In this document: positions 37,956 through 38,285 of the stretch, one piece after another | How the letters are laid out: each line of letters starts with the position of its first letter | Numbering within the stretch: the first letter of the stretch is position 1 | Assembly (NCBI GenBank): GCA_038087875.1 | Contig: JAXLNO010002288.1 | Coordinates: 24,590-64,000, forward strand | DNA length: 39,411 nt | Source of the DNA: Malacoraja senta | Lineage: Eukaryota | Direction: 5' to 3' | Program-made: the position numbers and the translations under genes | Notes under the pieces: model-generated | The model's input: the letters and a program-made list of their open reading frames with translations, nothing else | The model's database searches: none | What the model was told of the DNA's origin: nothing

Positions 37956-38285
37956 GGTCTGATATTGTACGACGACATCATGGGCAACACTTCTAAAGGG
38001 AAGAGCAAGCAGCCTGAGATTTTTGATCACTTTGAAAAATGCTTCTCTATCTTCAAACTGGAGAAGGAGTTGGTAAATAATTTGAGAGCTGAGACGCTGA
38101 GCCTTTGCGACCCCTTGGCTGGGAACCAGACTCGGGGAGGTGGTCTTACTGCTGTGACTGAGACCTCTCACCAGGTTACCGTTGCTGCGGCAGGCAACAA
38201 AGACTGGAAGGCCGTGAGAGTGGACCTGGTTGTTGCCCCCTTCAGCCAATACGCTTATGCGTTGTTAGGATGGACGGGTTCACGG
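37956..38285 (+). CDS. POLM: POLM coding exon 9 (Loop 1, Loop 2, third catalytic Asp)
   Basis: [10 protein letters not shown]...[12 protein letters not shown]...[27 protein letters not shown]; donor CGG|GTAAGT; 330 nt. Remaining exons not seen in window. Confidence 0.95.

Follow-up and report, generated by a model that had tools for sequence, protein, structure and literature searches.

A natural lysine at the human Arg387 position of DNA polymerase mu in sharks and rays, probably derived and convergent with TdT

The skate Malacoraja senta carries a gene for DNA polymerase mu (Pol mu) that encodes lysine at the position corresponding to Arg387 of the human enzyme, and the same residue is present in all sharks and rays examined. 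The gene lies on the forward strand of a 39,411-nucleotide stretch of genomic DNA (GenBank assembly GCA_038087875.1, contig JAXLNO010002288.1, positions 24,590 to 64,000), which was analysed as a whole and is referred to below as the window. It is the skate orthologue of POLM, not a TdT gene. The reading that we favour, and to which we give somewhat better than an even chance, is that the lysine is derived, by an AGR-to-AAR transition that was fixed on the stem of Elasmobranchii, kept in every member examined and convergent with TdT, and that it would make Pol mu an NHEJ polymerase with a looser brake. This is a clade-wide natural variant at the best-studied regulatory residue of a well-known enzyme; a literature search found no report of cartilaginous-fish Pol mu at the human Arg387 position. 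No single residue that sets the limited terminal-transferase activity of Pol mu apart from the unrestrained one of TdT is better characterised than Arg387. Sharks and rays, a whole vertebrate subclass, have had the “hyperactive” residue in its place since they diverged, which makes them a natural experiment on whether accurate end joining generally requires the brake. If Lys loosens the brake, the change is relevant to how the oldest living lineage that has V(D)J recombination generates junctional diversity, and to the patterns of mutation that double-strand break repair leaves in elasmobranch genomes; if Lys has no effect, the human mutagenesis result depends on sequence background.

To model the exons of the gene, public proteins of cartilaginous fishes were compared with the window by tblastn and the junctions were then inspected (Table 1). 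Nine coding exons lie in the window, with AG/GT at all internal boundaries and 473 codons without a stop, and a 5′UTR exon was also found upstream; the final two coding exons, which encode the thumb, are beyond the window. The motif D-H-F-E-K-C-F is translated from the ninth coding exon, a stop-free exon of 330 nt with a pyrimidine tract and AG in front of it and GTAAGT behind. An intron-less transcript contig of 1968 nt (L004), from a public sequencing run of a closely related skate, is 97% identical to the window at the nucleotide level. It aligns in ten blocks, corresponding to the nine coding exons and the 5′UTR exon, with block ends that agree with every modelled splice junction, and the model is thus backed by the transcript of a close relative. 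Its 526-residue product is 96.4% identical to the window model, aligns to it without gaps, and has DHFEKCF too. Sequencing error at the lysine codon is excluded, since the genome of Rhinoraja longicauda has the same AAA codon. The reading of the motif and its lysine in the first-pass annotation, which had been made from the letters of the window alone, is therefore borne out by translation, splice sites and transcript. The architecture is that of a family X polymerase: the nine window exons together match residues 1-473 of Rhinoraja Pol mu over their full length, and that protein carries the domains PF14716, PF10391, PF14792 and PF14791. Pfam searches of single exons of 70-110 aa recognised no domain.

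Table 1. Positions in the window of the Pol mu exons, of motifs and loops within them, and of intronic elements
Feature	Position	Strand	Evidence or remark
Non-coding first exon (5′UTR)	5968..6104	+	L004 block 1, 91% identity; GC-rich stretch (GC 0.52 in 4001-6000)
Coding exon 1, start codon and beginning of BRCT	7026..7237	+	ATG 7026, GT after 7237; 94% identical to Rhinoraja Pol mu N-terminus; L004 block 7002-7237
Coding exon 2, BRCT	12624..12804	+	AG/GT; tblastn to P0166; L004 block
Coding exon 3, linker and start of 8-kDa domain	19130..19225	+	AG/GT; tblastn; L004 block
Coding exon 4, 8-kDa domain	20765..20935	+	100% identity to P0166 over 57 aa; AG/GT; L004 block
Coding exon 5	21699..21770	+	AG/GT; tblastn; L004 block
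Coding exon 6, fingers, helix-hairpin-helix	24281..24401	+	AG/GT; tblastn; L004 block
Coding exon 7, palm, TGGFRR at end	32159..32291	+	AG/GT; tblastn; L004 block
Coding exon 8, palm, containing GHDVD	35723..35825	+	Translation; AG/GT; L004 block
GHDVD motif, His329 equivalent at 35739-35741	35736..35750	+	
Coding exon 9: Loop1, DHFEKCF, long Loop2 insert, VRVD, LLGWTGS	37956..38285	+	Translation; AG/GT; L004 block 37954-38285
Loop1	about 37968..38024	+	
DHFEKCF motif, Lys codon AAA at 38037-38039	38025..38045	+	Translation; HMMER/MAFFT alignment; Rhinoraja genome codon
Loop2, from DHFEKCF strand to VRVD strand	38058..38210	+	
Segment containing VRVD	38214..38285	+	
760-aa ORF with RVT_1 domain, intron between coding exons 6 and 7	27309..29591	-	E 1e-41
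Dispersed repeat, example copy	9810..10073	+	
Dispersed repeat, example copy	14665..15156	+	
Dispersed repeat, example copy	18606..18866	+	
Dispersed repeat, example copy	34413..34817	-	

In the MAFFT alignment the skate lysine stands opposite the arginine of DAFERSF in mammalian Pol mu, which is human Arg387, confirming that Lys occurs naturally at this position; in the HMMER alignment it stands opposite the lysine of DHFQKCF in mouse TdT (mouse Lys403). The surrounding catalytic machinery is retained. GHDVD in exon 8 supplies the equivalent of His329, as had been claimed for this gene, together with two catalytic Asp residues; VRVD supplies the third, and the equivalents of Phe385 and Phe389 are likewise kept. 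Skate and human Pol mu are orthologous and share their domain order, these motifs and LLGWTGS, which is also encoded by exon 9, and the skate residue at the brake position is identical to that of the engineered human mutant R387K. However, the two proteins are only ~48% identical, and the effect of R387K was measured in the human background alone; moreover, the mutant is engineered, whereas the elasmobranch lysine is natural and fixed across a subclass. Arg387 is a functional hallmark of the human enzyme and not a criterion of orthology, and the skate gene has Lys in its place.

For a survey of this residue, Pol mu and TdT proteins were gathered by a full HMMER scan and two word-index searches, which returned a large named set; all collected proteins were aligned, and each was classed by its best labelled relative. 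Lys is lineage-wide in sharks and rays and is not private to Malacoraja senta: it is found in all 24 elasmobranch Pol mu entries that include the motif, which come from 15 named species (10 sharks, 5 batoids), the window and the skate transcript. The residue, which the first-pass annotation discussed for a chondrichthyan Pol mu, thus belongs to sharks and rays and not to chondrichthyans as a whole: in the chimaera Callorhinchus all three entries have Arg. A database search seeded with Callorhinchus returned no second holocephalan species. Arg is also the residue of lamprey and hagfish (6/6), amphioxus (8/8), echinoderms (7/7) and 163 of the 170 bony-vertebrate Pol mu entries, and Lys that of TdT (22/22). 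The bony-vertebrate exceptions are Ser in salamanders (P0187, P0188 and P0211), Gln in one fragment, Thr in the deep-sea anglerfish Haplophryne mollis (P0238), whose relatives Photocorynus, Chaunax, Antennarius and Ogcocephalus have Arg, and Lys in the manatee Trichechus inunguis (P0337) and the teleost pomfret Pampus argenteus (P0315). Given these sporadic replacements, the position tolerates change. The codons involved, AAA in the window and Rhinoraja and AGG in teleosts, are one transition apart. The single-copy Pol mu/TdT-like proteins of invertebrates and cyclostomes belong to the same family and share the motif frame D-x-F-E-[KR]-x-[FL], but they differ among themselves at the brake position: deuterostome invertebrates and cyclostomes have Arg, whereas all 18 protostome or unplaced homologues have Lys (DHFEKW...). 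Since this is so, Lys is not in itself a marker of template independence, and does not alone make a TdT.

What the lysine may do is predicted from work on the human enzyme. Arg387 contacts the primer, opposes its backward translocation and counteracts His329, and has been described as a brake (PMC3592450, PMC4081086). The R387K mutant has up to 100-fold higher terminal-transferase activity and can expand repeats on substrates where the wild type does not (PMC4081086, PMC3592450). This activity depends on His329, Phe385 and Phe389, all of which have their equivalents in the skate protein. By the mechanism that we envisage, Arg387 of the human enzyme would grip the primer strand and slow its backward translocation after each addition, a hold that would act as a brake on both untemplated and iterative synthesis, and Lys would loosen it. 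Elasmobranch Pol mu would then remain a template-using, gap-filling polymerase of NHEJ with a weaker brake. At broken ends it would be expected to add untemplated nucleotides and to expand repeats more than the same protein with Arg. It is solely from human R387K that we infer this higher terminal-transferase activity.

Three observations weigh against a simple transfer of the R387K result, namely the protostome lysine, the sporadic changes in vertebrates, and the presence in several rays of Leu at the position of human Phe389. The Pol mu sequences of sawfish, stingray, manta and electric ray (P0160, P0161, P0162 and P0172) read DHFEKCL, combining Lys with this Leu, and in the human enzyme F389L leads to loss of terminal-transferase and end-joining activity (PMC4081086). 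Skates and sharks have Phe at this position, with Tyr in Hemiscyllium and Chiloscyllium. The same three observations favour the reading that competes most seriously with ours, in which the lysine is derived and clade-wide but functionally equal to Arg in the elasmobranch background, leaving terminal transfer and NHEJ unchanged. Lys for Arg is, besides, the most conservative of exchanges and takes one transition, and it stands alone, with no further TdT-type residue. Were the site neutral, however, with Arg a single transition away, a reversion would be expected in one or other of the 15 shark and ray species, and the lysine is without exception; the near-invariance of Arg in bony vertebrates is the counterpart of this. 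The absence of any reversal on the one side and the constancy of Arg on the other suggest that each state is maintained by selection. In the sole enzyme in which it has been tried, the human one, the same exchange had the large effect cited above (PMC4081086). We therefore regard a neutral swap as rather unlikely, and retain a loosened brake as the preferred prediction.

Apart from this residue, the elasmobranch protein is Pol mu-like, as judged from sequence comparison. Among 534 aligned columns, that of the lysine alone pairs elasmobranch Pol mu with a residue conserved in TdT and missing from other Pol mu proteins and the deuterostome outgroups, and the same screen returned zero columns for ray-finned fishes, tetrapods and mammals. 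A broad TdT-like shift is rejected, as one column alone shows the pattern. The more TdT-like, template-independent enzyme put forward in the first-pass annotation is a conjecture. Of the columns diagnostic of TdT, 25 in all, 6 show the TdT residue in elasmobranch Pol mu and 19 a different one; five of the 6 are not specific to elasmobranchs, and four of these vary among other lineages. The skate and TdT heptads (DHFEKCF and DHFQKCF) are alike in residue and position of the lysine, and the proteins share their fold, but the DNH mini-loop that helps to fix Loop1 in TdT is absent from the elasmobranch orthologues, whose thumb mini-loop, encoded by an exon outside the window, reads S/N/T-S-H, of the Pol mu type (NSH). 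The Rhinoraja orthologue as modelled by AlphaFold (mean pLDDT 84.5) fits human Pol mu complexes (TM scores of 0.96-0.98) slightly better than mouse TdT (0.92-0.95). In the model the lysine opens a confident strand, Loop1 is of intermediate confidence, and the Loop2 insert is disordered.

Both loops differ from those of human Pol mu. Loop1 is 3-4 residues shorter in cartilaginous-fish Pol mu, including that of chimaera, than in other Pol mu and TdT proteins. Loop2 of the skate is much longer than in the human protein and is predicted to be disordered; it comprises ~50 residues, against ~20 in mammals, and its counterpart in the Rhinoraja model (residues 409-442) has pLDDT <50. L004 retains all of exon 9 with no gap, so that no in-frame piece of the exon is spliced out in this transcript. 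The residue immediately ahead of DHF is Phe in cartilaginous-fish Pol mu and Met or Leu in other lineages.

The polarity of the change was assessed from tip states, minimum-change counts and tree tests, with Callorhinchus as the one holocephalan species. The maximum likelihood tree of 64 proteins, which was also rebuilt without the motif columns, contains three strongly supported clades of jawed-vertebrate sequences: cartilaginous-fish Pol mu (support 100/99), in which chimaera is basal and the window sequence is sister to Rhinoraja; bony-vertebrate Pol mu (97/88); and TdT (100/100), which contains the TdTs of chimaera, sharks, rays and skates. Cyclostomes, amphioxus and echinoderms fall outside all three. 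Cartilaginous and bony Pol mu are monophyletic in the best tree with support of 75/37 (73/51 without the motif columns), and the alternative of a clade of cartilaginous-fish Pol mu with TdT is 0.31 lnL units worse and is not rejected (p-AU 0.48), so that the order of the three clades is effectively a trichotomy. On the tree built with the motif columns and on that built without them alike, the Lys/Arg site requires a minimum of six changes. With Pol mu as one clade, a Lys gained once in TdT and once, independently, on the elasmobranch stem takes two steps, against three for retention of an ancestral Lys; if cartilaginous-fish Pol mu is joined to TdT, gain and retention cost the same.

Because the lineages that bracket the duplication of Pol mu and TdT have Arg, as does chimaera, and because gain takes two steps and not three, the lysine is probably derived, having replaced Arg on the elasmobranch stem in convergence with TdT. 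This reading carries two reservations: holocephalans are represented by one species, and the three clades form a trichotomy in which Pol mu monophyly is weakly supported. The first-pass annotation had raised the opposite polarity as a possibility, with Lys as the state from which TdT and Pol mu both started, and this is not supported. Such retention, with Lys in the pre-duplication gene kept by elasmobranch Pol mu and Arg arising separately in chimaera and bony vertebrates, would fit the lysine of TdT and of the protostome homologues, and on the nearly equal tree that joins cartilaginous-fish Pol mu to TdT it needs, with a reversal in Callorhinchus, the same two steps; the holocephalan sample is, again, one species. 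Against it, Arg is the state of lamprey, hagfish, amphioxus and echinoderms, that is, of every lineage around the duplication, and of the chimaera, sister to the Lys-bearing clade; the single Pol mu clade, which makes retention the costlier history, is that of the best tree and agrees with a shared Sulfatase/SGSH_C neighbour (below); and forcing elasmobranch Pol mu and TdT together, so that Lys arises once, costs 20.6 lnL units (p-AU 0.063). An ancestral lysine is thus improbable, and we keep to a derived one.

The assignment of the gene to POLM follows from the tree, which keeps it outside TdT, from a shared gene neighbourhood, and from the location of TdT on another chromosome. Over 473 aa the window protein is 90.5% identical to Rhinoraja longicauda Pol mu by blastp (88% mean identity by tblastn); mean tblastn identities are 65-76% to other shark and ray Pol mu and 57% to that of chimaera, and fall to 46-51% for cartilaginous-fish TdTs. 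Collinearity of the window with the Rhinoraja POLM locus extends through the introns, at 80-93% nucleotide identity, and Rhinoraja carries both genes, with Pol mu and TdT on different chromosomes. A TdT identity needed testing because, in a search of PDB sequences, exon 9 by itself gives mouse TdT 54 bits and human Pol mu 39.5; the C-terminal half of the Rhinoraja orthologue likewise scores higher for TdT (156.6 bits) than for Pol mu (151.4). There is next to no chance that what is labelled Pol mu here is in truth TdT (DNTT) or a paralogue derived from it: the tree, the overall identities and the genomic location all reject it unless the public annotations of cartilaginous-fish TdT are wrong, the full-length Rhinoraja orthologue has human Pol mu as its top score (473 bits), the thumb mini-loop of the orthologues is not DNH, and the higher TdT scores of the fragments reflect fast divergence of mammalian Pol mu. 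The initial identification as Pol mu therefore stands, including on the phylogenetic point, placement inside TdT, that had been named as the one to overturn it.

Gene neighbourhood settles the positional orthology of Pol mu. In the great white shark Carcharodon, the eel Anguilla and the cichlid Maylandia, the Pol mu gene is head-to-head with a Sulfatase/SGSH_C gene, and the sulfatase genes of eel and cichlid are clearly homologous to each other. The argument comes from the shark and not from the window, as the eel sulfatase gene had no tblastx match in the 7 kb that precede Pol mu in the window; at the Erpetoichthys Pol mu locus no neighbouring gene was found within 10 kb, and searches for Pol mu of Lepisosteus and Scyliorhinus returned no record. 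In Rhinoraja, Pol mu is followed 4.7 kb downstream by a Nudc_N/CS gene of 360 aa (L001 57018-57350, + strand). Its first exon appears to resemble NUDCD3, a gene located, like POLM, in human 7p13.

N additions are the commonest form of diversification at the V-J junctions of shark light chains, and have been attributed to TdT (PMC5192425). That a less restrained Pol mu contributes to them is possible but speculative. In its fullest form this idea would hold that a single convergent Arg-to-Lys change gave sharks and rays a Pol mu of naturally higher terminal-transferase activity, which would add N-like nucleotides during NHEJ and in antigen-receptor junctions alongside TdT and feed the unusually N-rich light-chain junctions, at the cost of more insertions and repeat expansions at repaired breaks. 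Taken as a whole, this scenario seems unlikely.

The introns of the window also contain repetitive elements. Between coding exons 6 and 7, an ORF of 760 aa on the reverse strand encodes a reverse-transcriptase domain (RVT_1); it lies in AT-rich surroundings (GC 0.31-0.36) and appears to be an intact ORF of a non-LTR retrotransposon. A dispersed intronic repeat occurs in many copies and in both orientations (examples in Table 1), with the translation “...SRTRGHSLRI.GK.F.TE.R..FFTQRVV.LWNSLPQ...”, and is also present in the Rhinoraja locus.
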